From Obrimoposthia wandeli (Eukaryota), in contig CDROCS010000253.1 in NCBI GenBank assembly GCA_977020255.1, forward strand, positions 3,038,001-3,102,000: a DNA stretch of 64,000 nucleotides. Direction: 5' to 3'. This document shows, piece by piece, positions 5,083 to 63,547 of this stretch. Numbering within the stretch: the first letter of the stretch is position 1; each line of letters opens with the position of its first letter. Under the pieces are notes generated by a model. That model was not told the origin of the DNA. It searched no databases and saw only the letters and a program-made list of their open reading frames with translations. Position numbers and translations under genes: made by a program.

Positions 5083-7197
5083 ATGTTCAATCAAGTTACA
5101 AAAACATTTCAATTCGGTAAGCATACCGTAACATTAGAAACTGGCGCTATCGCTCGTCAAGCATCAGCAGCTGTAATGGCAAGCATGGACGATACCTGTG
5201 TACTTGTTTCTGTTGTTGCTAAAAAAGAAGCTAAACCTGGACAGGATTTTTTCCCGTTAACAGTTAACTATCAAGAACGTGCATACGCTGCAGGTAAAAT
5301 TCCTGGTAGTTTCTTCAAACGTGAAGGTCGTCCTTCAGAAGAAGAAACACTTATCGCGCGTTTAATTGACCGTCCAATCCGTCCATTATTCCCAGAAGGT
5401 TTCACTAACGAAGTACAGGTAATTATTACTGTTGTTTCTGTTAACCCTGAAATTGCACCTGATATTATTTCTTTAATCGGAACTTCTGCTGCATTAGCTA
5501 TTTCAGGTGCACCATTTAGTGGTCCTGTTGGCGCAGCACGTGTTGGTTATGTTGATGGTCAATACATCCTTAACCCACTACAATCTGAACTTCCTGCAAG
5601 TCAATTAGATCTAGTTGTATCTGGTACTGATTCTGCTGTATTAATGGTTGAGTCTGAAGCAGATGTATTATCTGAAGAAGTAATGCTTGGCGCTGTTGTC
5701 TATGGCCATGAGCAAATGCAAGTAGCTGTTTCAGCAATCAAAGAATTTAAAGCAGAAGTTAATACTCCTTCTTGGAACTGGGAAGCTCCAGTTAAAAATG
5801 CTGAGTTATTAGCTAAAATTGCTGAGTTAAGTGAAGCACAAGTAAACGAAGCTTATCAAATTACTGAAAAAGCTGTTCGTTATGAAAAAATCAAAGAAAT
5901 CCGCAACACAGTAATTGAAACGTTATTAGCACAAGATGCTGATCTTGACGTTCAAGATGCTAAAGATTTATTCCATGATTTAGAAAAAACTGTTGTACGT
6001 GGTCGTATTACAGATGGCAACCCTCGTATTGATGGTCGCGATCCTGAGTCAATTCGTGCGTTAGATGTAATGACAGGTGTATTACCAAGAACTCATGGTT
6101 CAGCAGTATTTACACGTGGTGAAACTCAAGCATTAGTTACAGCGACACTTGGTACTCAACGTGATGCACAACGTCTTGATACCTTAATGGGTGATAAAAC
6201 TGACCCATTCATGCTTCATTACAACTTCCCTCCATATTGTGTAGGTGAAACTGGATTCGTTGGTAGCCCTAAGCGTCGTGAAATTGGCCATGGCCGTTTA
6301 GCGAAACGTGGTATGTTAGCGGTTATGCCTTCACTTGAAGAATTCCCGTATGCAGTACGTGTTGTTTCTGAAATCACTGAATCAAATGGTTCATCTTCAA
6401 TGGCTTCAGTATGTGGTACTTCATTAGCACTTATGGATGCTGGTGTTCCAATTAAAGCTTCTGTTGCTGGTATCGCAATGGGTCTTGTTAAAGAAGGCGA
6501 AAAATTCGTTGTTCTTTCTGACATTTTAGGTGATGAAGATCACTTAGGTGACATGGACTTTAAAGTAGCCGGTACTACTGGTGGTATTACTGCACTTCAA
6601 ATGGACATTAAAATTGAAGGCATTACTCAAGAAATCATGCAAATTGCTTTAAACCAAGCAAAAGCTGCACGTACTCACATATTATCTGTTATGGATGAAG
6701 CTATCGGTGGACACAGAGATGACATCTCTGAATTCGCTCCTCGCATTCATACCATGAAAGTAAGCCAAGATAAGATCCGTGACATCATTGGTAAAGGCGG
6801 CGCAACTATTCGTCAACTTACTGAAGAAACGGGTACTACTATTGAAATCGAAGATGATGGCACAGTTAAAATTGCTGCAACATCTAGCGAACAAGCTGAA
6901 GATGCTATCAACCGTATTAAAGCATTAACGGCTGAAATTGAAGTAGGTACACTTTACACAGGTAAAGTAGTGCGTATCGTTGATTTCGGTGCATTTGTTA
7001 ATGTACTTCCAGGTAAAGATGGTTTAGTACACATTTCTCAAATCTCTGAAGAGCGCGTTAATAACGTAAGCGAAGTCTTAACAGAAGGTCAAGAAGTGAA
7101 AGTTAAAGTACTAGAAGTTGATCGTCAAGGCCGTGTACGTTTAAGTATTAAAGAAGCTATGGAAAAACCAGCAACAACAGAAGCTGCTGCTGAGTAA
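5083..7197 (+). CDS. pnp: Polyribonucleotide nucleotidyltransferase
   Basis: [27 protein letters not shown]; KH and S1 domains. Confidence 0.99.
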
Positions 7198-12580: not shown

Positions 12581-13399
12581 TTATTTTTGATGTTTTTTTA
12601 ATAGTTTATCAATAGCTCTGCCAACAGCAAAAAATGCAAATGTTGCTGTAACATGCGTTGTTGCACCAAAACCACTTTGGCAATCTAAACGCGTAGCACC
12701 TTGCTCGCCATTACTCTTATCAGGTTTAGCTAAACAAACTTCACCTTGTTTACCATCAGCGGGGTAGCGTAATTGTTCTGTTGAATATACGGCATCAATG
12801 GAGAACTTCCGTTTTCCTGCTGTTTTAAGATCAGCACGGGGGAAGTTAAATTCGCGACGTAACTGATTTTTCACTTTAGCAAGTAACGGGTCTTGATAAG
12901 TCTTGCTCAAGTCAGTAATTTCAATTTTACTTGGATCCACCTGACCGCCAGCACCACCAATAGTGATAATGGGCAATTTACTTCCCCTACAAAAAGCAAT
13001 GAGGCGTGTTTTGATGTCGACAGAGTCTATGGCATCAATGACATAATCAAACTCTTTAGTAATTAAACTAGAGAGGTTTTCTACCGTTACAAAATCTTCA
13101 ATGATATTAACTTGGCACTCAGGATTGATTTGTTTGATGCGCTCAGCCATAACATCAACTTTACTCTGGCCAACCGTATCGGTTAACGCATGTATTTGAC
13201 GGTTAATGTTCGTGGTACAAATATCATCTAAATCAATTAAGGTTATTTTACCTATGCCATTGCGGGCTAAGGCTTCAGCTACCCAAGAGCCAACACCACC
13301 AATGCCAATAACACAAAAATTTGCTTGTTTTAAAATATTCGCGCCATGTTCGCCATATAAACGGCTAATGCCACCAAAACGTAAAGAATAGTCAGACAT
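12581..13399 (-). CDS. tcdA: tRNA threonylcarbamoyladenosine dehydratase (E1-like)
   Basis: RFGGISRLYG, VIGIGGVGSW, TNINRQIHAL, GGAGGQVDP; convergent with csdA-csdE as in enterics. Confidence 0.93.
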   Translation of the reverse strand: MSDYSLRFGGISRLYGEHGANILKQANFCVIGIGGVGSWVAEALARNGIGKITLIDLDDICTTNINRQIHALTDTVGQSKVDVMAERIKQINPECQVNIIEDFVTVENLSSLITKEFDYVIDAIDSVDIKTRLIAFCRGSKLPIITIGGAGGQVDPSKIEITDLSKTYQDPLLAKVKNQLRREFNFPRADLKTAGKRKFSIDAVYSTEQLRYPADGKQGEVCLAKPDKSNGEQGATRLDCQSGFGATTHVTATFAFFAVGRAIDKLLKKHQK

Positions 13400-13611
13400 A
13401 ATGAATTTTAAGAGTCTTGTTGAGTAATTGAGAAGGGAAAGCCGTTATTATAACGTCTAGTTCCTATGAGTTAAATACAATTCTGGATCAAAGGTTGAAC
13501 GATAATCTATCGTGATCATGGTATTTAAAAGCTCATAAAGTATTTTTCATGTGAATAACAACTATAGGGAAGGGTTATGCGTTTTAGCTGTTTTTTCGGA
13601 TAATAAAGCAC

Positions 13612-13638
13612 AAAAAAGGCAGCGAAAGCTGCCTTTTG
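13612..13638. terminator. Terminator hairpin downstream of gltA
   Basis: AAAAAAGGCAGC-GAAA-GCTGCCTTTT. Confidence 0.85.
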
Positions 13639-13673
13639 TTTAATTCATTGATGCTTAAATAAGCATTAAATCA

Positions 13674-14960
13674 TTATCTTTTATTTAATGGTACGAATTC
13701 ACGGTTGATTTCACCGGTGTATTTCTGGCGAGGACGACCGATTTTTTGACCCGGCTGAGACAACATTTCATCCCAGTGAGCAATCCAACCTACCGTTCTA
13801 GACATAGCAAAAATCACGGTAAACATGCTTGAAGGAATACCAATTGCTTTTAAGATGATACCTGAGTAAAAATCAACATTCGGGTAAAGTTTTTTCTCAA
13901 TAAAGTATGGGTCTTCAAGAGCAACTTTTTCTAATGCCATAGCAACATCAAGTAAAGGATCGCTGATACCAAGCTCATTCAATACTTCATGACAAGTTTC
14001 ACGCATTACTGTTGCACGAGGATCGAAGTTTTTATAAACACGATGACCAAAGCCCATTAAACGGAATGGGTCATTTTTATCCTTCGCTTTAGCTACATAT
14101 TCAGCAACGTTTTCTAAGCTACCAATTTGTTCAAGCATAGTTAGACATGCTTCATTAGCGCCGCCATGTGCAGGACCCCATAAAGAGGCAACACCCGCTG
14201 CTATACAAGCATATGGGTTAGCACCAGAAGAACCAGCTAAACGAACAGTCGAAGTTGAAGCATTTTGTTCGTGATCAGCATGCAAAGTAAATATTCTGTC
14301 CATAGCGTTAGCTACAGTAGGGCTTACTATATATTCTTCAGCAGGTACTGAGAACATCATGTGAAGGAAGTTTTCAGCGTAAGAAAGCTCATTGCGTGGG
14401 TATACAAAGGGTTGACCAACACTATATTTATAAGCCATTGCTGCGATGGTTGGCATTTTAGCAATCAATCTATGTGCACTACGTTTACGCTGTGCAGCGT
14501 CAGTGATATCTAAATCACTGTGATAGAAAGATGACATAGCACCAACAACACCACAAAGCATAGCCATTGGATGTGCATCAGGTAAGAAACCATGGAAAAA
14601 ATGAACTAGTTTCTCATGTACCATGGTATGTGTAGTAATGACTGATTTAAATTCTTCATACTCTGATTGCGTTGGCGCATCGCCATTCAATAAGATATAA
14701 CAAACTTCAAGGTAGTCAGCTTGTTTAGCAAGGCTATCAATAGGGTAGCCGCGGTGTTGTAAAATACCTTTGCCGCCATCAATGTAGGTAATAGATGATT
14801 CACAAGAACCCGTGGCTAAAAAGCCTGGGTCATAGGTGAAATAGCCATGGCTACCTAAAGTTCTAATATCAATTACGTCAGTACCAGCAGTACCTTTTAA
14901 AACTGGAAATTGTCCAATTTCTTTGCCATCAATACTCAGAGTGGCTTTTGATTCAGCCAT
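13674..14960 (-). CDS. gltA: Citrate synthase (type II)
   Basis: [36 protein letters not shown]. Confidence 0.99.
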
Positions 14961-15524
14961 AATGTTTTATCCCCTATCAATTATAATTTATATACATTTA
15001 CTGACATTCTACTAACTTACTTAATGTACATCTTAAATAAGCTCAGTGAATTCATTGTCAGTTATTGTGACTTTTCTTGGGTTTTTTAAACTGCCGACAT
15101 TCTACCCTGAAATGAATTTAAAATGTAAGAGTAATTATACTAAAGTTTAATGCAGTGCAAAATACTGTTCAAAAAACGCCCCATATGTAACTTAGCATGC
15201 CGTCAAAATTGTAATTCATTGTTATCGACTATATAATCGCTGCGTTCTGTAGCTTTTTATCTCTGTTATACGTTTTTTTTACTTTGGTAAAATTGAATGT
15301 TATTACAAAATCTAACTAGAATCACTTAATGAAGTTGGTTAGACTTATGACCGAATTGGTACATAAGATTATAAAATTGTAAAAGTTACCGTTCACTTTC
15401 GGGAATTACTTTTGTTTATATTGATTTTTAAGTTTCAATTAAGTTTTTAAGTCAGCTAAGTAAAGGCAGTTCATGAGTAACAATAATAAAAGTTGAAGGC
15501 TTTCGAGCTCTTTAGGCAACAATT

Positions 15525-15899
15525 GTGAAAAAACAACGTCCTGTAAACCTAGATTTAACTACAATAAAAATGCATCCCGCTGCTAATGCTTCTATTTTAC
15601 ACCGTATATCTGGTGTGATTATGGTTTTTGCTATTGGTATTTTATTGTTTACCCTTTCAACCTCTCTTTCTTCTGCTGAAGGATTTGCTCAAATTCAAGG
15701 TTACCTTGATGGCATATTCTTTAAATTCATTATTTTTGGCTGTCTTTCAGCATTGACTTACCATTTGTTAGCAGGTGTTCGTCACTTGTTAATGGACTTA
15801 GGTCATTTTGAAGAACTTGCTTCAGGTAATGCCACTGCCAAATTAATCATGGTTATTTGGTTAGCAGTATCAGCAGTTATAGGAGTTTGGTTATGGTAA
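15525..15899 (+). CDS. sdhC: Succinate dehydrogenase cytochrome b556 subunit
   Basis: QRPVNLDL, SILHRISG, YHLLAGVRHLLMD. Confidence 0.97.
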   Translation: MKKQRPVNLDLTTIKMHPAANASILHRISGVIMVFAIGILLFTLSTSLSSAEGFAQIQGYLDGIFFKFIIFGCLSALTYHLLAGVRHLLMDLGHFEELASGNATAKLIMVIWLAVSAVIGVWLW

Positions 15900-16240
15900 A
15901 CGTCGTCGCATCAGCAGGCCAAAATGGCGTGCATGATTATATTCTTTTAAGAGCTAGTGCAATTATTCTTGCACTATACACTTTATTCCTCGCAGGTTTC
16001 TTCGTAGTAACACCTAGTGTTACTTATGATGTATGGCAAAGTTTTTTTGCTTGTATGAGTGTTAAAGTAGCAACAGTAATGGCGTTATTAGCTTTACTTG
16101 TTCACGCCAAAATTGGTGTATGGCAAGTACTTTCTGATTACGTAAAACCTGCGTTTTTACGTGGAGCATTGCAATTTTTCTTTTCTGTTACTTTATTAGC
16201 CTACTTTATGTTTGGCTCTTTAACTGTGTGGGGTGTATAA
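15893..16240 (+). CDS. sdhD: Succinate dehydrogenase membrane anchor subunit
   Basis: ATG at 15893 with AGGAG upstream (ORF-track start 15857 looks too early); GVHDYILLRASA, HAKIGVWQVLSDYVK. Confidence 0.95.
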   Translation: MVNVVASAGQNGVHDYILLRASAIILALYTLFLAGFFVVTPSVTYDVWQSFFACMSVKVATVMALLALLVHAKIGVWQVLSDYVKPAFLRGALQFFFSVTLLAYFMFGSLTVWGV

Positions 16241-18007
16241 GTGAGCGTTCCAATTCGTGAATTTGACGCAATTGTTATTGGCGCAGGCGGCGCAGGTATG
16301 CGCGCTGCATTAGCAATTTCAGAATCAGGCAAATCTTGTGCCTTGATCTCTAAAGTATTTCCAACTCGTTCTCATACTGTATCTGCTCAAGGTGGTATTA
16401 CCGTAGCTTTAGGTAATGCTCATGAAGATCATTGGGAACAACACATGTACGATACCGTTAAAGGCAGCGATTATATCGGTGACCAAGACGCAATCGAATA
16501 CATGTGTAAAACAGGCCCAGAGTCTATTATAGAATTAGAGAAAATGGGCTTACCATTTTCTCGTACGGAAGAAGGTAAAATTTACCAACGTCCATTTGGT
16601 GGCCAGTCTAAAAACTTTGGTGGTGAACAAGCCGCTCGTACTGCTGCCGCAGCTGACCGTACAGGTCATGCACTACTTCATTGTTTGTATCAACAAAACG
16701 TTAAAAACAAAACCAATGTTTACTCTGAGTGGTATGCATTAGATTTGGTTAAAAACAGTGATGGTGCCGTTGTTGGTACCACTGCCATTTGTATTGAAAC
16801 GGGCGAAATTGTTTACTTTAAAGCACGTGCTACGGTACTTGCTACTGGTGGCGCTGGTCGAATCTTTGCTTCTACAACCAATGCTCACATCAACACTGGT
16901 GATGGTGTTGGTATGTCTCTTCGTGCTGGCATTCAAATGCAAGACATGGAAATGTGGCAATTCCACCCAACTGGTATAGCGGGTGCTGGTGTACTTGTTA
17001 CTGAAGGTTGTCGTGGAGAAGGTGGTTACCTTCTAAATAAAGACGGCGAACGCTTCATGGAACGTTATGCACCAAATGCTAAAGATTTAGCAGGTCGTGA
17101 TGTTGTTGCTCGTTCAATGATGACAGAGATCCGTGAAGGTCGTGGTTGTGACGGTCCTTGGGGTCCACATATTAAGTTGAAACTTGATCATTTAGGCCGT
17201 GAAACGTTATATAAACGTTTACCAGGTGTTTGTGATTTATCTAAAACTTTTGCACACGTTGATCCAGCTGAAGAGCCTATTCCAGTTATACCTACATGTC
17301 ATTACCAAATGGGTGGTGTACCTTGTAACGTTAATGGTCAAGCGCTTAACATTGGCACTGATGGTAAAGAAACTATTGTTGAAGGTTTATTTGCTGTTGG
17401 TGAAATCGCTTGTGTATCTGTTCATGGTGCAAACCGCTTAGGTGGTAACTCATTACTTGATTTAGTGGTATTTGGTCGTGCAGCAGGTAACTTCTTAGGT
17501 ACTTACTTAAACGAAACACAAAATGCTAGCGAAGCGTCTGAATCTGATCTAGAAGCAGCATTAGCGCGTACTAATCGTTGGGAATCATCTACTAAAGGTG
17601 AAGACCCTGTGCAAATCCGTAAAGATTTACAGATGTGTATGCAAATGAACTTCTCAGTATTCCGTGAAGGCGAAGCCATGGCGCAAGGCATGAAAGAGCT
17701 AACTGAAATACGTGAACGTTTAAAAAATGCTCGTTTAGATGACAAGTCATCAGAATTCAACACCCAACGTATTGAGTGTTTAGAATTAGATAACTTAATG
17801 GAAACCGCTTTTTGTTCTGCAAAAGCAGCAAACTTCCGTACAGAATCTCGTGGTGCTCATGCGCGTCAAGATTTCACTGAACGTGATGATGTAAATTGGT
17901 TATGTCACTCAGTCTACACACCAGAGACTGAAGAAATGACTAAACGTGATGTTAATATGAAACCCATTCACCGCGAAGCTTTCCCTCCGAAAGCACGTGT
18001 ATATTAA
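16241..18007 (+). CDS. sdhA: Succinate dehydrogenase flavoprotein
   Basis: [16 protein letters not shown] (FAD His), [11 protein letters not shown]. Confidence 0.99.
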
Positions 18008-30888: not shown

Positions 30889-32817
30889 TTGAAGTATTTA
30901 AACCTTGTCTCATCACTTTTAGCTGTTGTGTTATTAAATGGTTGTTTGGAAGTAGAAGATAACAGTTCGGATGTCAAAGCGTTATTAGACCAAGCTGAAA
31001 ACTCAGTTAGCATCAAAGGTGTTGTCGTTGATGCGCTAGATTTTAAACCTATTGGTAATGCCATAATTACCGTAAAAGTCGGGTCTACAGACGTTATTTC
31101 TAACTTTGAAGTTACCGATGGTGATTTTGAATTAACAGGTTTACCTCGTTCTTCAGATATAGAGATCATTATATCCAGTCCAGATAATAAATTTCTTTCA
31201 AGAACATTTTTCACCCAAACTGCATTCGGAAGTAAAGACAGTATCGAAGATGTTGGTAGTTTTGCTGTATCTGAGTCGGTAGATGTAGAAGTTTCTGTTA
31301 TTGATAATGAAACAGGCAATGCTTTATCAACATTAGAGTTTATTGCTTATTCTCACTCAGGTAGTAATTCATCAGCATATAAATACCAGCACGTTTCTTC
31401 ATTTGATGTTGAAACAGGCGTATATACCATAACCTTGCCAAAATTTATTAATACCAGTATCAGTGCTAATTTAGATTTTGATAAAGATGGCGAAGCTGAT
31501 TACGTACCTGAGCTTAGTAACTTTTTACACGGTCATAATTTATATATAGGGTCCGCGAATACAAAAGAGTTTTTAAGAGTGCATGTTAATGAAGTAGCAA
31601 TGGCTTCAGATCTTGAAATTAGGCTTTCTTTGGTTGATGAAACAGCAGAGCCATTGCTTGGTGCTACTTTTTATATCGAAGATAGTGTTGTTGATAGTAC
31701 ATATGATGAATCAACTAGCCAATATGTTCTTACAACACCATTAAAAGATACGGTAAGTCTTCAACTACCCGCATTCACAAGCAATGAAGTTAAATACCAA
31801 AGTAGTTCTTTTACCGTAAGAAAGTTAGCTGACGGTAATTTCAATATTATAAAAAATGGTAGTTCTAATAATTGTTGTTTCGTCATTCCTAGTGCGACTG
31901 TGATTGATTTAGCGCTTTCACCACAAGTGATAATTGAAAGTGAAACACCACTTGAAGTTGTTCTTGCTGCTACTGATGTTAACTCAGTAGATTCTAGTTT
32001 TAGTGTATTCTATTCACAAGCTATAGCTGTTGAAGTTGAAAATATTTCATTAACAAATAGCCAAGGGTTTACAGTGTTAAAGGGGAATGCGGATGCAAGT
32101 GATCAAGTAGCTGCAGGTACAACACTTATTACTGGTGGTTTATCTTTTCCCGTTACTTTTACATTGAGCTTGAACGATACGCGTTTAACCGTAACGCCAG
32201 TGACCCCGCTGATGATACCTGATTCATATAGCTATGATATTCAATCGGTAATTAATAAAGCGACTCTTGAACGTGCAGATATATATAACGATCAATTAAC
32301 CTTTGAGATAAGCTCTAACACTGATGAAGTCTTTTCGGCTGCTGATATTAAACTTGATAATGGAAATTATACCACTAATGGAAGTGTTATAACGTCTAGT
32401 AATTCAGCAGGAGATACTTACTCTTCTTATAACAGGAATGATTCAGCTTATTTGTATTTTCCACTGAATATTAATGCATTAGAGAAATTAACGTTACGTA
32501 AAACCTCTGTAATCAATGATGGCACTTCATCAGTAAGTTCAAATGACTTTCACGTGGTTAGCGATGGGCGAATAAACGCTACTGCTGTCGGTATTGTTAA
32601 GTTAGCAGCAAATGAACATGTAACATATGGGTCAATTAACCGTTCTGTTATTCGTGGCACAGCCCAAATAGAAACTCAGAAAGTCTATCGATTGAATACT
32701 TGGGAGTATTTATCAGATAATACTGGCGCTGAATCTAATAGTATTAGTTTTGAATATTCATTGGAAACTAAAGCTGGTGAAGTGGAAACTGGTATTATTA
32801 CTATCCCAGTACAGTAA
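30889..32817 (+). CDS. Large acidic beta-rich lipoprotein, Ig-like/carboxypeptidase-regulatory-like domains
   Basis: Lipobox LLNGC; IKGVVVDA..KPIGNAIITV; DFDKDGEAD Ca-binding-type loop; S/T/D-rich. Confidence 0.7.
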   Translation: MKYLNLVSSLLAVVLLNGCLEVEDNSSDVKALLDQAENSVSIKGVVVDALDFKPIGNAIITVKVGSTDVISNFEVTDGDFELTGLPRSSDIEIIISSPDNKFLSRTFFTQTAFGSKDSIEDVGSFAVSESVDVEVSVIDNETGNALSTLEFIAYSHSGSNSSAYKYQHVSSFDVETGVYTITLPKFINTSISANLDFDKDGEADYVPELSNFLHGHNLYIGSANTKEFLRVHVNEVAMASDLEIRLSLVDETAEPLLGATFYIEDSVVDSTYDESTSQYVLTTPLKDTVSLQLPAFTSNEVKYQSSSFTVRKLADGNFNIIKNGSSNNCCFVIPSATVIDLALSPQVIIESETPLEVVLAATDVNSVDSSFSVFYSQAIAVEVENISLTNSQGFTVLKGNADASDQVAAGTTLITGGLSFPVTFTLSLNDTRLTVTPVTPLMIPDSYSYDIQSVINKATLERADIYNDQLTFEISSNTDEVFSAADIKLDNGNYTTNGSVITSSNSAGDTYSSYNRNDSAYLYFPLNINALEKLTLRKTSVINDGTSSVSSNDFHVVSDGRINATAVGIVKLAANEHVTYGSINRSVIRGTAQIETQKVYRLNTWEYLSDNTGAESNSISFEYSLETKAGEVETGIITIPVQ

Positions 32818-47402: not shown

Positions 47403-48173
47403 GTGAATAATATAACCGATACTCAACATTCAGAGAAAGACAAAAGATTAATCATTTTAGATACAGAGACTACAGGTATCAATCCCAGAGAAGGGCATCG
47501 AATTGTAGAGATTGGCTGTGTCGAGATGATAAATCGTCAACTAACTGGACGAACCTATCACGCCTATATCAAACCACTTGATCAACGTGGTCAAGTATTT
47601 GTAATGGATCAAGAAGTTATTAATATTCATGGTTTAACCAATGAATTTCTTAATGATAAGCCCATTTTTTCTCAAGTTGTTCATGAGTTTATTGATTTTA
47701 TCCGTGGTGCAGAGTTAGTCATACATAATTCCAAGTTTGACGTTGGTTTTATGGACCATGAGTTTTCTTTGTTTAATTCGATGGGACGAAGCCAAGATAA
47801 AGTCCCAATGACACAAGACATCTGTACCATTACCGATACCTTGAAAGTATCAAAAGACGAATTGGGCTCTCCAAAAACTTTAGATTACTTAGCGCGATTT
47901 TACCGAGTAGACAAGTTAGTAGACCGTACCTATCACGGGGCCTTGATAGATGCGCAATTATTGGCATATGTCTATATTGAAATGACGCGTAAGCAATCAA
48001 GCTTTAATTTGTCAGCAGGTGAGGCCGGCAATGCAGATGCTAATGCAATCAGAAGAGTCTCTTCGGCTAGGAATAAATTAAAGATTATTGCTGCTTCGGC
48101 CGATGAATTAGAAGCACATACAGAGAGAGTAGCTGTAATCGGTAAAAAAGGAGGAGATCCACTTTGGAAATAA
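47403..48173 (+). CDS. dnaQ: DNA polymerase III epsilon subunit
   Basis: ExoI LDTETTG, ExoII HNSKFDVGFMD, ExoIII HGALIDAQLL; C-terminal ELEAH tail. Confidence 0.96.
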   Translation: MNNITDTQHSEKDKRLIILDTETTGINPREGHRIVEIGCVEMINRQLTGRTYHAYIKPLDQRGQVFVMDQEVINIHGLTNEFLNDKPIFSQVVHEFIDFIRGAELVIHNSKFDVGFMDHEFSLFNSMGRSQDKVPMTQDICTITDTLKVSKDELGSPKTLDYLARFYRVDKLVDRTYHGALIDAQLLAYVYIEMTRKQSSFNLSAGEAGNADANAIRRVSSARNKLKIIAASADELEAHTERVAVIGKKGGDPLWK

Positions 48174-49531
48174 ATAAGCATCATTATTCCAACTTACCAT
48201 TAAATAAAACATTGAAGCTGATTGCTTTTGTATTTACCATTATTGCAGCATTCAATGCTGTGGCATTCTCTAATAGTGATATAGAAAGTAAGGATGAGAA
48301 CAATAAGCTTAATAAAACTACGGTTGAATATTATCAGAAAGATAATATAACGAATCAAATACCGTACTTTGATAACCGTTTTCGTTTGGATGCTAATTTA
48401 GAAGAAATAACGCTAATTTTTTATCGTAAAAGTGGCAGTACACCTATTATCCTGATCAGACCTGATGGGAGTAAAATAAGAGTAAACCAATTTGATCATG
48501 AAAAAGTCCAGTGGTTTGATGACAGCACCTTTGACATGATTAAGATTAAAAAACCTATGCCAGGTCCTTGGCAAGCAGTGGGTGATATTTTACCTAATAG
48601 CCAGATATCAGTAATATCTGATGTGAAAATTGCAGTAAAGCCCTTACCTGATATTACCTTTTCAGGTGAGACGCTAAAAGTGGAAGGCAAACTCTTTAAT
48701 GGTGATAATGCGATAAAAAGTCCATATTTTAAAAACGTTGTTAAACTAGACGTCAATTTTTACAGTACCAACAACTCCCTTTATGAAAATTTTGGTGCCG
48801 ATGCTATTAAGGTAACTTCTTTTCGCGATGATGGTCATGGCTTAGATGAATATGCCAATGATAATATTTTTACGGGAGAGTTTATCCTAGATTTCCCTCC
48901 TGGGGAGTGGCAGCCTGTTTACTATGTAAAACTGCCAATGACAACACGTGAACTAAGACAAACGCCGATCTTGTTATACAAAACACCGGTAGAGATCAGT
49001 GTTGTTAAATCTGAAGATGTCGAAAAACCTCATCAATTACTCTTATCTATAGATTCTAGTTTTGTCGATCCTAACAGTCTAGTGTTTCAGGGGAAGTTTA
49101 CTTTTCCAGACCGACAAATTGAATCTTTTTCTATTATGGAAGAAAGTGGTGGAAGTAGAACTACCACGATTACTAATACAGAGCCGGGTATATACCGAGT
49201 AAATGTCAGTGCCTTTGGTAAAACGATTTCAGGACGTGAGTTTCGCTTAGTTGTACCAGAATTTAGTTTTAATGTAGAAGACGATAATAATGTGCTTAAT
49301 ACCAGCAATGCAGTGAATGCTGATGGGACAGTTACCATAATTGCAACTGCCGATGAGTTACTCATTAAAGCAGAGCAAGATAAAGCAGAGGCTTTGTTCG
49401 CGCTACAACAAACAAAAGATGCAAAAGAGCAAGAAACTATTATAATTATTGCCGCGGGTAATAGTGTCATTATCCTAATTGCGGTTGTTTTGTTCTTTAC
49501 TTTACGACGAAAAAAAATAAAAACTAAATAA
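48164..49531 (+). CDS. TIGR03503-like conserved exported protein with C-terminal TM anchor
   Basis: FDNRFRLD, PMPGPWQAVG, FRDDGHGLDE..NDNIFTG; start codon uncertain. Confidence 0.7.
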   Translation: MEINKHHYSNLPLNKTLKLIAFVFTIIAAFNAVAFSNSDIESKDENNKLNKTTVEYYQKDNITNQIPYFDNRFRLDANLEEITLIFYRKSGSTPIILIRPDGSKIRVNQFDHEKVQWFDDSTFDMIKIKKPMPGPWQAVGDILPNSQISVISDVKIAVKPLPDITFSGETLKVEGKLFNGDNAIKSPYFKNVVKLDVNFYSTNNSLYENFGADAIKVTSFRDDGHGLDEYANDNIFTGEFILDFPPGEWQPVYYVKLPMTTRELRQTPILLYKTPVEISVVKSEDVEKPHQLLLSIDSSFVDPNSLVFQGKFTFPDRQIESFSIMEESGGSRTTTITNTEPGIYRVNVSAFGKTISGREFRLVVPEFSFNVEDDNNVLNTSNAVNADGTVTIIATADELLIKAEQDKAEALFALQQTKDAKEQETIIIIAAGNSVIILIAVVLFFTLRRKKIKTK

Positions 49532-49712: not shown

Positions 49713-49789
49713 GGAGTGGTAGTTCAGTTGGTTAGAATACCGGCCTGTCACGCCGGGGGTCGCGGGTTCGAGTCCCGTCCACTCCGCCA
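49713..49789 (+). tRNA. tRNA-Asp(GTC) copy 1
   Basis: 77-nt cloverleaf GGAGTGG...CCTGTCACG...GGTTCGAGTCC...CCACTCCGCCA. Confidence 0.98.
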
Positions 49790-49855
49790 ATTTTGTTAAA
49801 ATCATCATAGCTGATGCGAAGAGAGCTTCGTTAAACACTCAAAACGAAAAGCAGC

Positions 49856-49932
49856 GGAGTGGTAGTTCAGTTGGTTAGAATACCGGCCTGTCACGCCGGG
49901 GGTCGCGGGTTCGAGTCCCGTCCACTCCGCCA
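49856..49932 (+). tRNA. tRNA-Asp(GTC) copy 2
   Basis: Identical to copy 1. Confidence 0.98.
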
Positions 49933-49998
49933 ATTTTGTTAAAATCATCATAGTTGATGCGAAGTGATATTCGTTAAAGTATCAAAGCAAAAAACAGC

Positions 49999-50075
49999 GG
50001 AGTGGTAGTTCAGTTGGTTAGAATACCGGCCTGTCACGCCGGGGGTCGCGGGTTCGAGTCCCGTCCACTCCGCCA
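49999..50075 (+). tRNA. tRNA-Asp(GTC) copy 3
   Basis: Identical to copy 1. Confidence 0.98.
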
Positions 50076-50141
50076 ATTTTGTTAAAATCATCATAGTTGA
50101 TGCGAAGTGATATTCGTTAAAGTATCAAAGCAAAAAGTAGC

Positions 50142-50218
50142 GGAGTGGTAGTTCAGTTGGTTAGAATACCGGCCTGTCACGCCGGGGGTCGCGGGTTCGA
50201 GTCCCGTCCACTCCGCCA
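50142..50218 (+). tRNA. tRNA-Asp(GTC) copy 4
   Basis: Identical to copy 1. Confidence 0.98.
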
Positions 50219-50284
50219 ATTTTGTTAAAATCATCATAGTTGATGCGAAGTGATATTCGTTAAAGTATCAAAGCAAAAAGTAGC

Positions 50285-50361
50285 GGAGTGGTAGTTCAGT
50301 TGGTTAGAATACCGGCCTGTCACGCCGGGGGTCGCGGGTTCGAGTCCCGTCCACTCCGCCA
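50285..50361 (+). tRNA. tRNA-Asp(GTC) copy 5
   Basis: Identical to copy 1. Confidence 0.98.
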
Positions 50362-50427
50362 ATTTTGTTAAAATCATCATAGTTGATGCGAGGTGATATT
50401 CGTTAAAGTATCAAAGCAAAAAACAGC

Positions 50428-50504
50428 GGAGTGGTAGTTCAGTTGGTTAGAATACCGGCCTGTCACGCCGGGGGTCGCGGGTTCGAGTCCCGTCCACTCC
50501 GCCA
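50428..50504 (+). tRNA. tRNA-Asp(GTC) copy 6
   Basis: Identical to copy 1. Confidence 0.98.
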
Positions 50505-50612
50505 ATTTTGTTAAAATCATCATAGTTGATGCGGGTTGTAAGTCCTGCTAAAATTTATAAAAGAAAAAGGTCGCGATTATTTATTTAGTTGTGATTTATA
50601 AGCAAAGATCGC

Positions 50613-50689
50613 GGAGTGGTAGTTCAGTTGGTTAGAATACCGGCCTGTCACGCCGGGGGTCGCGGGTTCGAGTCCCGTCCACTCCGCCA
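50613..50689 (+). tRNA. tRNA-Asp(GTC) copy 7
   Basis: Identical to copy 1; longer, different preceding spacer. Confidence 0.98.
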
Positions 50690-57457: not shown

Positions 57458-57506
57458 CCCGCATTCAAACTAAAAAGTAGTTCGTACTTTTCAGTTTGAA
57501 TGCGGG
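57458..57506. other. Long near-perfect hairpin just after the Hsp70 operon stop
   Basis: CCCGCATTCAAACT-AAAAAGTA...TACTTTTC-AGTTTGAATGCGGG; no adjacent U tract on the minus strand. Confidence 0.6.
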
Positions 57507-57511
57507 ACAGT

Positions 57512-60376
57512 TTAACTGGCAGTATCGGCTGGCAATAACTTCAGTCCGCTTGGTAAGGCATCACCAAAAATCCGTTTAGTTTCGACTTCAGTTAATTCCG
57601 TCACTTCACTTACCATCTTCAGCCAACTGTCTGGTGCACGACTGTTTTTCAACTTCGTGATGACTAATTGACGGGCTTGCTCGTCAATGTCACGGCTTCG
57701 ATCACCACATTTTCGGGTCATCATCACCGCAGAAAAACCAATATGCGGTTGCTTTTTCCAGTCACACGCCAATAATTGTGGTAACCAGGCTTCAACCTGC
57801 TCTGGCCCGATCATATTATGACTGCTGCCATAAAACGGGCTGCGTGACGCAATACGGCCAATGGCCCACCAACTCGATTGCGTTGCTGTTTTTTTCAGCC
57901 GCACCAATAACCAGTTCACCAACTCTACTTTTACGTCAATGCTCAGGTGTTCCATTGACGCTGCCAGTCGCACCATTTCCTCATAAGCACGGTTGTTCAA
58001 TTCGCTGCTCAGTTTACGGTTTTTCAAAACGGCTGGATTAATATATTTGGCAATATCACCATAAATAGTCTGCTGCTGCTGTGCAGTTAAGCCACCGGCA
58101 ATGCGACGCCAAAATATCCACCAATCACTCCATGCCAAGTTCGTGGTATTGAACTGTAACCCAGCCTGATACAGTGGCCAGCACTGCTCAATACGCTGCG
58201 GGTCAATCGGGTAACCAAAACCGGGGCGTAACGTAAAACTAGCCAGTTTGAACCAGTTACGTTCGTGTAGATCACTGCGGCGACGATTTTTTAGATCACC
58301 GAGCAATTGATCAGCTAACGCTCGTAGTACCGGTGTCGGCCATAAATCACGTTTCCCGAGCAGCTTTTCCAGCTCTGGACGCAGTTGTTTAACCGCTTTC
58401 GGGTCGGACTGTTTTAGTTTTTGACCATAAACATGCTGCAATTGTGCGCTGGCTTGAGAAAATTTCGGCGGTAAGCTGATTGGCTCAACGGTGTCCTGCT
58501 CATCATCTTGATCTAATTGCGTCAATTGCTGACGTAACTGAAATTCAACTTGCCAACGTTGTTGCGGCAACATTAAGCTGACACATTCAAGTTTTAATGT
58601 GCCGACTTCGGTTAACCTGACGGCAAGATTTACGGTAACGTCAGCTTTATTGTCTAAGCGAGTGTTATCACTCTCCTCAGCCGAGAGTTGAGCAATTAAC
58701 GGCGGTAAAGTGACAAACTGTGACTGATTGGCATCAATCAATGTACCCGGTAAAAATTCATCTTCGGCCGTGGTGGAAACCAAGCGGAAACTAACTGGTT
58801 GTCCTAGTCGTAAGACAAATTGTTGCTCAGTTAAAAAAATTTCTGTTTCTTGCTCTGTGCCTTTAGACAATAAGCAAATGGCACGTTGTGGTTGTGTGTT
58901 ATCAGCAACTGCCGCCTCATCTAATAGCAAGAAAAACGAGCGAGCAGAGCCGCCGCCAATGGTTAAATGTGCCCCTCGGCGCGCCATCGAATAAGCCACC
59001 GCGCCATAAGCCACGGCTAAATCGGGATGTTTATTTTCCAGCTCGGTCACAGGCTGGCCACGCCAGTGTTCAAATAGATCACAGGCACGCTGTTTAATCA
59101 GCAGACTATTAAAGACGCCACCATTGAATAAAACTGCGCTTGGAATAGCATGCGCTTGATCATTTTCAGCCATGCCCAATGCTTGACGACAACTGCTTTG
59201 ATGGGCGGCTAAAAATTGGGACAAATGTTTACTAATCGCTGGATCGGCGGCATAAGGTAAGCCAAATTCAACCATCGCACTGCGTGATTGTTGAGGCTGC
59301 TGTGCAAAATCAGTCAACGGGAAGAAACCATCCAGTGCAACCTGATGGACTTGGCTTTTGGTTAATTGACAGCTTTTAGCCCCGCCAATCAACCGTGAAC
59401 CACTGCCCAATACGGTTACCGTGGCTGACTCTTTGGCATTATCAGCCAGTAACGCTTCTTTGGCGATGCGAGTTTGCTGAATCAATTGTGATAATGCAGC
59501 ACTGTTGAGTTTTTTGTTACCTTGATTTAGCTGTTGCTCTGCGCTATGTGCGAGGGCTAAATCAACATTGTCTCCCCCCAACATCAGATGGTCACCCACC
59601 CCAATTCGGCTTAAGGTTAACTCGCCTTTTTCACTGCCGACACTAATCAGGCTTAAATCGGTGGTACCACCGCCAACATCACAGACCATTAATAGCGGAA
59701 TATCTTGCAACAGTTGCTTTGCTTGTGTGTGATGACGATTATACCAGTCATAACATACCGCCTGAGGCTCTTCTAATAAGACAATATCAGTTAAACCCGC
59801 TAACGCTGCGGCTTCAACTGTCAGGCTACGTGCTGCTTCATCAAAGGAGGCTGGCACGGTGATCACCACTTGTTGCGCAGCTAAGTGATGTTCTGGATGG
59901 GCATGATCCCATGCATGACAAATATGACTTAAGTAACTGGCACTGGCGATCACTGGCGAGATCTGAGGAATTTCTTGCGCGGCTCCCCACGGCAAAATAG
60001 CCGCACGGCGATCAACCTGAGGGTGAGAGAGCCAGCTTTTAGCACTGCTGACCAGACGGCCTGCCACTTTAGAGCCGAGTTCACGTGCCCATTGGCCAAT
60101 AATGACCTGAGGCAACTCGCCCTGCAGTGGTTTGGTTTGCCATGGCAATACTAAGTCTTCCGCCGCTAGTTCACCTGCGGTAGGATGATAACGAAAAGAA
60201 GGTAACAGTGGTTTTTTCGCCACTTCACCGGGCGCAACCAATTGTTCAATTTCAAAAATGTTAATTTGTTCGCTGCTTAACGGCTGGGTAAGATCCGCAT
60301 AAGCGACCACGGTATGCGTGGTGCCAAGATCGATACCGATTAAGAAACGCGCCGATGATGTCTGACGAGTGCTCAT
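57512..60376 (-). CDS. Atypical Hsp70-family ATPase with long helical C-terminal domain (DUF3731-like)
   Basis: GIDLGTT, SAKSWL, TVPASFD, LEEPQA, DVGGGTTDLS, GDHLMLGGDNVD; about 330-aa Trp/Arg-rich helical tail. Confidence 0.88.
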   Translation of the reverse strand: MSTRQTSSARFLIGIDLGTTHTVVAYADLTQPLSSEQINIFEIEQLVAPGEVAKKPLLPSFRYHPTAGELAAEDLVLPWQTKPLQGELPQVIIGQWARELGSKVAGRLVSSAKSWLSHPQVDRRAAILPWGAAQEIPQISPVIASASYLSHICHAWDHAHPEHHLAAQQVVITVPASFDEAARSLTVEAAALAGLTDIVLLEEPQAVCYDWYNRHHTQAKQLLQDIPLLMVCDVGGGTTDLSLISVGSEKGELTLSRIGVGDHLMLGGDNVDLALAHSAEQQLNQGNKKLNSAALSQLIQQTRIAKEALLADNAKESATVTVLGSGSRLIGGAKSCQLTKSQVHQVALDGFFPLTDFAQQPQQSRSAMVEFGLPYAADPAISKHLSQFLAAHQSSCRQALGMAENDQAHAIPSAVLFNGGVFNSLLIKQRACDLFEHWRGQPVTELENKHPDLAVAYGAVAYSMARRGAHLTIGGGSARSFFLLLDEAAVADNTQPQRAICLLSKGTEQETEIFLTEQQFVLRLGQPVSFRLVSTTAEDEFLPGTLIDANQSQFVTLPPLIAQLSAEESDNTRLDNKADVTVNLAVRLTEVGTLKLECVSLMLPQQRWQVEFQLRQQLTQLDQDDEQDTVEPISLPPKFSQASAQLQHVYGQKLKQSDPKAVKQLRPELEKLLGKRDLWPTPVLRALADQLLGDLKNRRRSDLHERNWFKLASFTLRPGFGYPIDPQRIEQCWPLYQAGLQFNTTNLAWSDWWIFWRRIAGGLTAQQQQTIYGDIAKYINPAVLKNRKLSSELNNRAYEEMVRLAASMEHLSIDVKVELVNWLLVRLKKTATQSSWWAIGRIASRSPFYGSSHNMIGPEQVEAWLPQLLACDWKKQPHIGFSAVMMTRKCGDRSRDIDEQARQLVITKLKNSRAPDSWLKMVSEVTELTEVETKRIFGDALPSGLKLLPADTAS

Positions 60377-60407
60377 TCAAACTCCGAAATAAGTGATTTA
60401 ATTTTGA

Positions 60408-60498
60408 GAAGGGAACAACCCTTCTCTTCAATCAATGCCTTGCCTAAAGGCATTTCTAATTCCAGCTGAATCATGCATCTTCAAGTGGAACGGGTATA
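60408..60498. mobile_element. Single-arm fragment of family A inside the Hsp70 operon
   Basis: GGGAACAACC.TTCTCTTCAATCAATGCCTTGCCTAAAG...CTTCAAGTGGAACGGGTATA matches 44146-44231. Confidence 0.8.
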
Positions 60499-60562
60499 CG
60501 ACGACAAGGGTGTGCGCGTTAATCGATGAGATAAGAGACAATGTGATGTGTTTAATATGTCT

Positions 60563-60598
60563 GTTACCTAATGGCAGCGTACTATCCCATTAGGTAAC
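60563..60598. other. Perfect 12-bp stem between the two Hsp70 genes
   Basis: GTTACCTAATGG-N12-CCATTAGGTAAC. Confidence 0.6.
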
Positions 60599-60653
60599 GG
60601 AGTCTAATTACTACAGTATCGTCATCGTATTGATCGGCAACAACGCTGAATAG

Positions 60654-62492
60654 TTATTTACTTCTCACTTCAAATTCAACCTGCCAGCGCTCGGCACCAT
60701 CACGTGGAATAGCTTCAAGTGCTAAGGTGCCAACCTCAGTCACTCGGGCAGCCAAACGCACTGGCACTACTTCGCCAGCACTGCGTCCTGCTAATGGCAA
60801 GTTCACTTCAATGGCTGGTAACTGTTCTAACTCTTCCGGCTCCCAGTAATCAAGTAAAATTCCCGGTTGATCATCACGGCGCACTGTTGAGCCAAAAAAC
60901 TTAAATTGTACTGGCTGACCAACCACCAAGCCAAATTCGCGGCCTGGTACTTCAAGCTGTGCGCCTTCTTCCATGCCAAATGGCGCAACACATAACGCTT
61001 CAATTGGTGGCTCCATGCCTGGAATTGCTGGCATCGCACTTTCAATGCCAACATAATAAGCACTGGCAATTCCGCCGCGAATTCTAACTCCTTTTCCCTG
61101 ACGCACATAACCATAATAAGCCGCACCACTGGCAACCGCTAAGTCGAGATCTAACCCCGTCAGTAACTTCGCCTCAGCCGCATCAGCCGTTGTTAACCAG
61201 CGATTAATATTAGCAAACAAACGCTCACTTAATAACGGAGATTTTAAAACACCACCATTAAATAATACTGCGGTCGGTTTAATAAACTCATCAGCCTCGG
61301 TGCCAAACAATTCAGCAACAGCCGCTTGTTGTCGGCTCAGGAAGCCAGCCAAATGACGAGAAATGGCGGCATCTTGCGCATAAGGTAAGCCCATTTGCGT
61401 TAAGGCACCGCGCTGCTGTTCAACCGGATGTTCGCTAATGTCAGTGGCGGGGAAGAAACCTTCCACCAATGTTTGCTGTACTTCTTGCTGCGTTAATTCT
61501 GTTTGTAAGGTACCCGCCATTAATTTAGAACCGCGACTCGGCACGACAATAGCTACTTCAGCTAAGTCTGGATCATTAAGTAAGGCTTCTTTAGCATTAC
61601 GACAAGCCTGAGTAATGCCCTGAATTTGCCATGGCTGTAAATTTTTACCTTGCTGGGCCAGTTTTGCTTTTAAACGATAGGCCAGCGCTAAATCCATATT
61701 GTCACCGCCGAGCAAAATATGATCACCAACAGCAACACGATTTAAGCTCAGATTACCTTCTTCTTCAGTGACGGCTACCAAAGAGAGATCGGTCGTGCCA
61801 CCTCCAATATCAACAACGAGAATAACATCACCAACACTGACCTGATCGCGCCAAGCTTGATTATGATTATGAATCCAGCTATATAATGCAGCCTGCGGCT
61901 CTTCAAGTAAGGTTACCTTAGTAAAGCCAACGTCAGTGGCAGCCTGAGCCGTAAGCTCGCGCGCAGCGGGATCAAATGAAGCAGGCACGGTAATCGTAAT
62001 ATCTTGTTGCGCCAGCAGATCTTGTGGAAAACGATGATCCCAAGCGGCTTTTAAATGTTCTAGATATGCACAAGCAGCCGCCACGGGTGATAACTTACTC
62101 ACTTCATCTGGGCTATTAAAAGGTAAAAAATCACTGTGGCGATCAACACCGCTATGACATAACCAACTTTTAGCACTCGCGATTAATCGCAAGGGCGTTT
62201 TACTGCCTAAATGACGCGCCATTGCGCCAACAATCAAGCTTGGTTTTGATTGCCAAGGTAATGCGATGTCGCCCTCAGCTAATTCAGCTTCATGGGCTTG
62301 GTAAATAAAAGAAGGTAATTGTGATTTTTCTTCAACGCTGCCCGGTGTGCTTAATTGCGGAATGGCTAATACTTGATGAGTTAATTGCTCTTCATCACTG
62401 CTTAAGTCGACATACGAAAGCACACAATGTGTGGTACCGAGATCGATGCCAACACTATAATGCGCATTATTTTCAGTGATTAACTGACTCAT
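60654..62492 (-). CDS. Atypical Hsp70-family ATPase lacking the helical lid
   Basis: GIDLGTT, SAKSWL, TVPASFD, LEEPQAA, DIGGGTTDLS, GDHILLGGDNMD; ends RWQVEFEVRSK. Confidence 0.9.
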   Translation of the reverse strand: MSQLITENNAHYSVGIDLGTTHCVLSYVDLSSDEEQLTHQVLAIPQLSTPGSVEEKSQLPSFIYQAHEAELAEGDIALPWQSKPSLIVGAMARHLGSKTPLRLIASAKSWLCHSGVDRHSDFLPFNSPDEVSKLSPVAAACAYLEHLKAAWDHRFPQDLLAQQDITITVPASFDPAARELTAQAATDVGFTKVTLLEEPQAALYSWIHNHNQAWRDQVSVGDVILVVDIGGGTTDLSLVAVTEEEGNLSLNRVAVGDHILLGGDNMDLALAYRLKAKLAQQGKNLQPWQIQGITQACRNAKEALLNDPDLAEVAIVVPSRGSKLMAGTLQTELTQQEVQQTLVEGFFPATDISEHPVEQQRGALTQMGLPYAQDAAISRHLAGFLSRQQAAVAELFGTEADEFIKPTAVLFNGGVLKSPLLSERLFANINRWLTTADAAEAKLLTGLDLDLAVASGAAYYGYVRQGKGVRIRGGIASAYYVGIESAMPAIPGMEPPIEALCVAPFGMEEGAQLEVPGREFGLVVGQPVQFKFFGSTVRRDDQPGILLDYWEPEELEQLPAIEVNLPLAGRSAGEVVPVRLAARVTEVGTLALEAIPRDGAERWQVEFEVRSK

Positions 62493-63136
62493 AGTTCCAC
62501 CTCCGCAGGTGCTAGAATGCGGGTATTATGATCAACCGATAACTTAGGTAATCTAATATCAGTCACTTGCCAGCCACGATGGACCAACGTACCGTTAAAC
62601 GGTGCCTGTCCCATGACATTGCCGGTTAAACGAACCTGTGAGGCATCAAAACCAACCGGTAAACTAATGCGACTTTCTTCTTCTTCGTCACGTACGGCGG
62701 CAAAGCTAAAATAATCAGCCAGCACTTTATGACTACCACTGTGGATCACACGTGCTGCGGCACCAATTTCAGCATCGCCAAAACCAGATAAATCTTCTTG
62801 GACAAAATCAATAAAACGCGCTTCTTGTTGTAATAAGGCTAACAATTGTAATGCGGCGTCTGGCGTTGCTTCTTTTAATGTTTTCTCGACTTCCTTGATC
62901 ACTTCGACCGTTTTAATCACTTCAACTAGCTTTTCAACTTCTTTGATCACTTCAACCGTTTTGATGACTTCTACCGGTTTTTCAACTTCTATTTCCTTAG
63001 TTATTTCCTTTACCACCTCAACAGTTTTTTCACCGCCTTTAGTGATATAAAGAATAAAAAATATCAGGATGAAGACCATCAGCCCACCATGGCCCATATC
63101 GAGTGTGGTTGGTATCGCCATAAAATCAAAGTTCAT
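62489..63136 (-). CDS. Membrane-anchored DUF2760-like protein
   Basis: TM GLMVFILIFFILYI, repeat stalk, ALQLLALLQQEARFIDF, GTLVHRGW; 4-bp overlap with the Hsp70 start. Confidence 0.8.
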   Translation of the reverse strand: MNFDFMAIPTTLDMGHGGLMVFILIFFILYITKGGEKTVEVVKEITKEIEVEKPVEVIKTVEVIKEVEKLVEVIKTVEVIKEVEKTLKEATPDAALQLLALLQQEARFIDFVQEDLSGFGDAEIGAAARVIHSGSHKVLADYFSFAAVRDEEEESRISLPVGFDASQVRLTGNVMGQAPFNGTLVHRGWQVTDIRLPKLSVDHNTRILAPAEVEL

Positions 63137-63547
63137 TGGTGTCTCTCACTGTAAAAAAATAATAAATAAACACGGCATGTGCTCGTTAACACAGATAAAA
63201 GTGATGCTAAACAGCCAAACCGTAAATTTTGCTAATTCTATCATGTCCCGCCCTAAGTCGCTCAAATCTTGTAAAAAGTACGTGCTATATTGTGACTATT
63301 TAACAAATTATCTTAAGGATGCGAGTAATTAATCAGCAACTCACGTTTTAGGTGGCATGGTTTTCAATCAATAACCGTCTATCTTTAAAACAGCGATGAA
63401 ACATTCGAATAATAAAGCAGCTAAAAAACATAGAATTTATCTATTTTATAATGCTTGCTGGTTCTTTTAAGGTATGATTATCCCCTTTTTTGCACAAAAT
63501 AAATGTTGGCTAACCTGTCATCATTTGCACCGAGATACCGATTCTGT

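Follow-up and report, generated by a model that had tools for sequence, protein, structure and literature searches.

A widespread gene module encoding a DUF2760 protein and two Hsp70-like ATPases, a candidate J-independent chaperone machine

The A-B-C locus and its recurrence

We analyzed three adjacent genes, here called A, B and C, in a window of 64,000 nucleotides (nt) deposited for Obrimoposthia wandeli (GenBank assembly GCA_977020255.1, contig CDROCS010000253.1, positions 3,038,001 to 3,102,000 of the forward strand). The window is the whole stretch of DNA that was analyzed, and all coordinates below are counted from its first nucleotide. A preliminary reading of this DNA from its letters only (hereafter the sequence-only reading) had described three co-oriented genes, the first two overlapping by 4 bp, and this arrangement is confirmed by the open reading frames (ORFs). 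A encodes a DUF2760 protein, B and C encode Hsp70-like proteins, and the stretch shared by A and B (62489-62492) places the stop codon of A over the start codon of B. These genes form a real, widespread and uncharacterised module. We regard it as a variant within the Hsp70 chaperones, not as a system of a new category.

The genes, their parts and the surrounding signals are listed below (aa, amino acids; NBD, nucleotide-binding domain; SBD, substrate-binding domain; AF2, AlphaFold2; pLDDT, predicted local distance difference test; PDB, Protein Data Bank).

62489-63136, minus strand: gene A, 215 aa; Pfam DUF2760, E 5.6e-53
63038-63097, minus strand: membrane helix of A, residues 14-33, predicted single pass (AF2 helix, hydropathy)
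62873-63037, minus strand: low-complexity spacer of A, residues 34-88 (orthologue alignment, pLDDT)
62492-62872, minus strand: DUF2760 domain of A, residues 89-215 (AF2 pLDDT 77-96)
60654-62492, minus strand: gene B, 612 aa; Pfam HSP70, NBD part, E 1.9e-15
61098-62492, minus strand: NBD of B, residues 1-465 (Pfam HSP70; DnaK alignment)
60657-61097, minus strand: C-terminal beta-rich domain of B, residues 466-612, homologous to C 468-617 (B/C alignment)
60377-60652, minus strand: B-C spacer, 276 bp, with hairpins; length of this gap variable elsewhere
57512-60376, minus strand: gene C, 954 aa; Pfam HSP70 in the NBD, E 2.8e-15, and DUF3731, E 3.4e-98
58976-60376, minus strand: NBD of C, residues 1-467 (Pfam HSP70; phmmer against PDB)
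58526-58975, minus strand: predicted SBD-beta-like sandwich of C, residues 468-617 (AF2 and Foldseek)
58457-58525, minus strand: acidic linker of C, residues 618-640, mostly disordered (pLDDT <50 at model residues 150-168; composition)
57515-58456, minus strand: DUF3731 of C, residues 641-954, predicted all-alpha solenoid (Pfam, AF2)
57458-57506, minus strand: hairpin 3′ of C, with a 22-nt stem, beginning 5 nt past the stop codon of C
63137-63547: presumed to hold the operon promoter; ~410 bp without coding sequence, bounded by A and by a divergent gene (plus strand) whose product is hydrophobic

The sequence-only reading had also presented this layout as a recurring cluster, and the survey of gene neighbourhoods bears this out. 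In a collection holding one genome per species, 596 of the 600 listed pattern matches encode a relative of C, so that at least 596 species are concerned, and the hosts of the module belong to the Gamma-, Beta- and Alphaproteobacteria, including Vibrio, Photobacterium, Burkholderia and methanotrophs. The 80 loci that were fetched comprise 63 with A-B-C, nine cut by a contig end within 2.7 kb and eight with C alone according to tblastn. The identical A-B-C order is therefore found in 63 of the 71 informative loci, which is not chance adjacency. In the C-alone loci, which come from seven Methylococcales and one Oleiphilaceae, the 10 kb of upstream DNA contain neither A nor B. In 60 of 62 loci, A and B overlap by 1 or 4 bp. 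The order of the triad persists down to 41% identity of A and is also found in a Comamonadaceae replicon and, with a C of 33% identity, on a conjugative plasmid of Bradyrhizobium. Clustering of all flanking ORFs of the 80 loci revealed no conserved fourth gene.

In Methylobacter tundripaludum SV96, A-B (with a 4-bp overlap) and C lie on different scaffolds; we therefore consider A-B as a tight core and C as a co-occurring but separable partner. In this strain, C begins 16 nt after a gene encoding a ParE-family toxin (locus L069, 9656-9964). The distances between loci computed for A, for B and for C are correlated (r 0.80-0.92), which shows co-inheritance of the three genes, not their interaction. 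Two variant loci were also observed: in one (L084, 7001-12077), two short unannotated ORFs separate A and C and no B is recognisable, and in the other (L087, 1619-2356), a short contig, an unrelated convergent gene follows A.

The hairpin that follows C is probably the 3′ end of the operon transcript, though it is devoid of a clear U-run. The B-C spacer carries a hairpin with 15-nt arms (60560-60601) and smaller ones, which could set the B:C expression ratio in this organism; the gap between B and C is not conserved, ranging from -80 to +486 bp in other loci (the value of -80 stems from the ORF-start call). A promoter and terminator scan of the locus gave matches that were no more frequent than in shuffled sequence, and no promoter was assigned.

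The two ATPases and the DUF2760 protein

Both Hsp70s had been considered as probably active ATPases that resemble each other more than DnaK, and the two claims agree with the sequences. The motifs GIDLGTT, SAKSWL, EEP and GGGTTD are present in the translations of both B and C and align to D8/T11/T12, K70, E171 and D194-D201 of DnaK. In the alignment of 63 B and 75 C orthologues to E. coli DnaK from which all conservation counts of B and C were taken, the catalytic positions are invariant, namely D8, T11, T12, K70, P143, R151, E171 and D194, as are G196-198, T199, D201, G229, K270 and G341-342. B and C look like catalytically competent ATPases. They share 40% identity across all 612 residues of B (E 9e-146), compared to 24-27% identity of each with E. 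coli DnaK, in the NBD only (24% for B, to DnaK residues 5-383). B orthologues from different classes are 44-59% identical, compared to 37-40% between B and C, and the duplication that gave rise to B and C is therefore old. The Pfam HSP70 match covers only positions 2-271 of the 599 positions of the profile, and the best PDB matches of C by phmmer are DnaK NBDs (E 2e-9). Among NCBIfam models, the best one for both proteins is HscA (E 1e-24 to 1e-25); their scores of 81-89 bits, compared to cut-offs of 620-709 for HscA and 648-823 for DnaK, leave them below the canonical equivalog level.

The C-terminal parts of the two proteins were examined using an AF2 model of C residues 465-954 (mean pLDDT 81.6), which consists of a beta sandwich (strands at model residues 16-148) and one helix, a disordered acidic linker and an all-alpha solenoid. 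Foldseek against PDB relates the beta part to the SBDs of DnaK, BiP and Sse1, with a probability of ~1.0 but E-values of 1e-3 to 1e-2 and low TM-scores, and the PDB sequence and profile searches with the C-terminal half of C gave no match beyond the NBD. The B/C alignment extends to residue 612 of B, which is the end of the beta domain and the point where B stops. By homology to C, the C-terminal domain of B would be an SBD-beta and, since B ends directly after it, B would be a lid-less Hsp70. The model of C is likewise devoid of a helical lid, one short helix and the disordered linker leading into the DUF3731 solenoid. Most 10-residue blocks of the solenoid have a pLDDT of 85-97, and Foldseek relates it to designed armadillo-repeat proteins and to importin-alpha, with target-normalised TM-scores of 0.29-0.51. 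The DUF3731 region is basic (net charge +13) and rich in Trp (13 W), and includes the highly conserved block RRR...HE..W...RPGFG...W..WW..WRR..GGL; B is strongly acidic (net charge -32). According to this model, DUF3731 would be an armadillo/HEAT-like solenoid occupying the lid position of C.

DnaK docks the J-domain through R167, N170 and T173. The equivalent of R167 is Thr in 61 of the 63 B proteins and Leu or Val in most C proteins, 12 of 75 retaining Arg; that of N170 is Glu in all 63 B and all 75 C, and that of T173 is Gln in 63/63 B and 74/75 C. As had been noticed from the sequence, the window holds no J-domain gene: tblastn found neither a J-domain nor a GrpE gene at E<=1, using one E. 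coli query each (DnaJ for the J-domain), a search that a very divergent J-domain could escape. J-domain matches were detected in only three of ~85 loci, at scattered positions, so that no J-protein gene is conserved in the flanks or travels with the module. These J-domain-like matches are at 13114-13221 of locus L008 (300 bp downstream of C, on the opposite strand), 626-733 of L004 and 4049-4144 of L019. The J-contact residues are thus replaced in both ATPases, and the best reading is that the machine is J-independent.

The location of the DUF2760 protein at the membrane, also proposed by the sequence-only reading, is supported by the predicted N-terminal helix 14-33 (maximum Kyte-Doolittle mean over 19 residues of 2.07, from residue 14) and by the Lys/Arg residues conserved directly after it in 32 orthologues. 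A is thus predicted to be a single-pass inner-membrane anchor. Its topology would be N-out/C-in, the domain being placed in the cytoplasm because of the positive-inside rule and of the need to meet ATP-dependent partners. The acidic N-terminal stub of 13 residues is conserved, P9, D13 and H16 being invariant in the same orthologues and H16 opening the helix; this conserved region (residues 1-16, 63089-63136) is presumably periplasmic or interfacial. The spacer is made of (V/I)-E-K repeats here and is Pro/Ala-rich in other taxa, with a highly variable length, and residues 37-87 have a pLDDT <50. At 50% identity, the DUF2760 domain falls into 1,759 clusters. Representatives were listed for 150 of them (proteins of ~130-370 aa), and almost all of these carry the domain at the C-terminus, its start ranging from residue 1 to residue 239.

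In the AF2 model, the DUF2760 domain comprises helices 92-115 and 121-142 followed by a seven-strand beta domain. The APAEVEL motif at its C-terminus is 90-100% conserved per position; the idea that EVEL is a free EEVD-like tail offered to the solenoid was rejected, as it sits in a confident beta strand of the model. In a Foldseek search of the A model against 350,542 PDB chains, ranks 1-5 are all GrpE (3a6m, 4ani and 1dkg; Thermus, Geobacillus and E. coli), and GrpE or human GrpEL1 account for 10 of the top 40 fold matches. The query-normalised TM-score of A to GrpE is 0.19-0.23. The comparison of the model with viral structures gave heterogeneous unrelated matches at E-values similar to those of GrpE. 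The DUF2760/GrpE alignment made by hhalign is collinear, with GFD facing FDP, HRGW facing a Gly-Tyr motif and APAEVEL facing RPAmVxV, which is a hint only. "GrpE-like" would therefore denote for DUF2760 a fold-level lead, not a family membership.

Genomic context and published data

The window is core chromosome, carrying infB, pnp, sdhA-sucABC, hrpA, rlmI-like, cysK-like and rnt genes. The neighbours of the locus are fadE, a TetR-family gene and a membrane-protein gene, and two acyl-CoA dehydrogenases are encoded in the window. Flanks of the module are lineage-specific, yet 21-34 loci share families of upstream genes. The G+C content of A-B-C is 0.42-0.48, again above that of the neighbouring genes, and that of their third codon positions (GC3) is 0.36-0.43 compared to 0.25-0.31 for these neighbours, which may reflect an old horizontal transfer or a weak codon adaptation. 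A recent horizontal transfer or an island is disfavoured by the partial synteny with Vibrio (hrpA and rnt nearby) and by the housekeeping context.

Other features of the window were recorded on its plus strand. An S15 leader (Rfam RF00114, 53.5 bits) lies at 4436-4549, 3′ of infB and upstream of pnp (5083-7197), which is the usual arrangement. A single ORF of 568 aa (10783-12489) fuses a class-V aminotransferase of the cysteine desulfurase type to a SufE domain. Seven identical tandem tRNA-Asp(GTC) genes occupy 49713-50689, six of them spaced 143 nt apart and the last gap being 185 nt. For two long ORFs (30889-32817, 642 aa, and 48164-49531, 455 aa), Pfam gave nothing at E<=1e-5.

The sequence-only reading had listed anti-phage conflict among the possible roles of the system, which the genomic data do not support. 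The clustering of flanking ORFs in the 80 loci shows no conserved effector gene beside the module, be it a nuclease, a toxin, McrBC or another one. A was found in none of 50,697 phage records. Among 72,556 plasmid records, 11 carry C, and most of these are megabase-sized chromids from Burkholderia and Caballeronia. In a PADLOC search, B (E 7e-6) and C (E 1e-4) gave a local match of ~90 residues, about one sixth of the profile, to the candidate PDC-M61B, and A gave no match.

The sequence-only reading knew of no function assigned to this cluster, and our literature search retrieved no paper naming DUF2760, DUF3731, PF10816 or PF12531. A search on transmembrane GrpE-like Hsp70 operons likewise retrieved nothing relevant. 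RefSeq names these proteins "DUF2760 domain-containing protein" and "Hsp70 family protein". A 2026 review considers the derivatives of DnaK in bacteria as largely unexplored, with the exception of HscA and, less so, of HscC (PMC13580251).

In V. cholerae, VC1373 and VC1374 are annotated as DnaK-related, and from this annotation and the listing of VC1373-1375 as an operon, the latter appears to be the orthologous operon. Its mentions in the literature are limited to omics lists. The operon is repressed in biofilm (PMC9201469), its genes show a small change with riboflavin (PMC5816637), and the VC1374 transcript has a lower abundance in a comparison of the wild type versus a vc1639 mutant (PMC5636140). 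Furthermore, chromatin immunoprecipitation located a HapR site between VC1375 and VC1376, and a "VC1375 promoter" fragment is activated by HapR in vivo and in vitro; since the start site is listed for the plus strand, the HapR-activated transcript is either that of this operon or that of VC1376 (PMC10328515). In Vibrio metoecus (locus L040), three GGDEF diguanylate-cyclase genes (5675-6982, 12880-14037 and 15072-16406), one of them with a CHASE sensor domain, flank the operon, which fits with this HapR site. One "VC1374" of the literature is a strain name and not the gene, and for the "DnaK-related protein" reported by proteomics in Photobacterium angustum and Thiodictyon, no link to the family could be made by sequence.

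Interpretation and comparison with known systems

The dedicated, membrane-tethered and heteromeric Hsp70 machine with a specific client that the sequence-only reading had inferred is a reasonable proposal. We propose, with about an even chance of being right, that the module is a self-contained and specialised J-independent Hsp70 machine working at the cytoplasmic face of the inner membrane, in which A is perhaps an exchange factor. A would anchor in the inner membrane, its flexible and variable spacer holding the cytoplasmic DUF2760 domain, and this domain would dock on the NBD of B and perhaps on that of C. Docking would bring the ATPase to the membrane and govern the exchange of nucleotides. 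B would be the active lid-less Hsp70, made of an NBD and a beta substrate-binding domain; C would be an ancient paralogue of B in which the lid was replaced by a basic solenoid that binds a partner or a client. A and B, made in coupled amounts, would form the core, and C would be their partner, usually encoded by the same operon. The membrane topology, the physical contacts, the exchange-factor activity and the client of this scheme are what we infer from the data at hand. A bolder and more doubtful version, to which we give less credence, is that DUF2760 is a membrane-anchored relative or analogue of GrpE and that, with its two lid-less Hsp70s, it constitutes a fourth type of bacterial Hsp70 system, free of J-protein and dedicated to inner-membrane targets.

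Several observations weigh against the J-independent membrane machine. The GrpE fold matches of A are weak, with E-values of 0.36-1.1 (noise level), probabilities of 0.54-0.13 and a root-mean-square deviation of 9-15 Å. Among 49 DUF2760 members, none matches Pfam GrpE even at E<=10. The hhalign comparison of the DUF2760 profile built from these 49 sequences with E. coli GrpE and with a 13-sequence GrpE alignment built from plasmid and chromid copies is not significant (probability 0.2-0.3%), and PDB sequence and profile searches with A gave no match, GrpE included. A could therefore serve only as an anchor or as a regulator, or even be a client. One AF2 model provides both the SBD-like and the solenoid assignment, with low TM-scores and, for the former, Foldseek E-values of 1e-3 to 1e-2. 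Some contigs carry A with no adjoining B, or A and C with no recognisable B. Moreover, armadillo-repeat proteins such as HspBP1, Fes1 and Sil1 are Hsp70 exchange factors of eukaryotes, and hence the exchange role could belong to the armadillo-like solenoid of C instead of A.

This last point leads to the main alternative view of the module, in which B and C are the functional pair, one acting on the other in an Hsp110-like manner or through a solenoid of the HspBP1/Fes1 type in C, and A is only a tether or a regulated inhibitor. We regard this as unlikely overall, although it has an appreciable chance. B and C, paralogues of ancient origin, occur together even where they are unlinked, the model of C also matches the Hsp110 protein Sse1, its armadillo-like solenoid is basic where B is acidic, and the sequence profiles give A no relation to GrpE. 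However, the translational coupling seen in nearly all loci concerns A and B and not the B-C pair, the A-B pair remains intact where C lies elsewhere, and GrpE is the only family among the best fold matches of A. A conflict system, in which Hsp70-like ATPases would sense or remodel a component of an invader as suggested for CnuD, has in our opinion a small chance of being the right explanation. The weak PADLOC matches of B and C to PDC-M61B, the published architecture of CnuD (Hsp70 NBD/SBD and HEAT-like repeats; PMC11090510), the copy on a conjugative Bradyrhizobium plasmid, the position of C directly after a ParE toxin gene in M. tundripaludum and the somewhat higher GC3 would agree with it. 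Nevertheless, no effector gene is conserved alongside, the window is a housekeeping one with the same flanking families recurring among loci, phage records are devoid of the module and the few plasmid records are mostly chromids; furthermore, the catalytic motifs are intact here and reported as degenerate in CnuD. Lastly, B and C could be actin/MreB-like polymerising ATPases whose filament is attached to the membrane through A. Weak Pfam and NCBIfam matches to MreB_Mbl and BeeR (E ~1e-6 to 1e-8) point in this direction, but they reflect the fold shared by actin and Hsp70, the HSP70, HscA and DnaK models being better (E 1e-15 to 1e-25); the Hsp70-specific K70 and R151 are invariant, and a DnaK-like SBD is predicted after the NBD, which makes such filaments very improbable.

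Hsp70 machines belong to the chaperones that are understood best, and as a rule they depend on a J-protein. The module would test whether Hsp70 cycles can be driven otherwise than by a J-protein, and solving it would give functions to two widespread DUF families. Its study would also open a part of the "dark matter" of bacterial DnaK derivatives (PMC13580251).

The J-independent machine proposed here can be compared with several known systems. It shares with DnaK-DnaJ-GrpE the actin-fold NBD with all its catalytic residues. A beta SBD is predicted after this NBD in the model of C, and the only consistent fold match of A, a weak one, is the two-helix and beta-domain architecture of GrpE. It differs from this system by B and C being 24-27% identical to DnaK in the NBD only, below the NCBIfam cut-offs and devoid of lid, by the absence of a J-protein and the replacement of J-contact residues, by the presence of two paralogous ATPases, and by A being predicted as membrane-anchored with no detectable sequence relation to GrpE. 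HscA/HscB, HscC/DjlC and the NBD-only YegD are likewise dedicated Hsp70 paralogues encoded with their own cofactor, and the lids of HscA and HscC are reported to be shortened (PMC13580251). However, they have neither a DUF2760 partner nor a solenoid extension, and HscA and HscC each use a J-protein. DjlA is a membrane-anchored J-protein that brings DnaK to the inner membrane. A resembles it by its predicted N-terminal membrane helix, spacer and cytoplasmic domain (an Hsp70 cofactor in DjlA) but has no J-domain or HPD motif, its domain being DUF2760.

As in the Hsp70-Hsp110 pair, two Hsp70-fold paralogues are found here, one with a larger C-terminal part whose model matches Sse1. The likeness of the C model to the armadillo-repeat exchange factors HspBP1, Fes1 and Sil1 concerns the fold class only, homology not being claimed. 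Unlike these two eukaryotic cases, the present system is bacterial, and its solenoid is part of an Hsp70 polypeptide and not a factor on its own. CnuD of type III CoCoNuT, which combines an Hsp70-like NBD/SBD with HEAT-like repeats, is encoded with a McrB-like GTPase and McrC (DUF2357) and is reported to have degenerate ATPase motifs (PMC11090510). Compared by its published description only, it has the domain order predicted for C; by contrast, the module has no McrB/McrC neighbours in the window, no extra gene is conserved in the 80 loci, and the ATPase motifs of the module are intact. PDC-M61 of PADLOC, itself a candidate only, shares an Hsp70-like ATPase with the module but differs from it in that the match is only local and that A has none.

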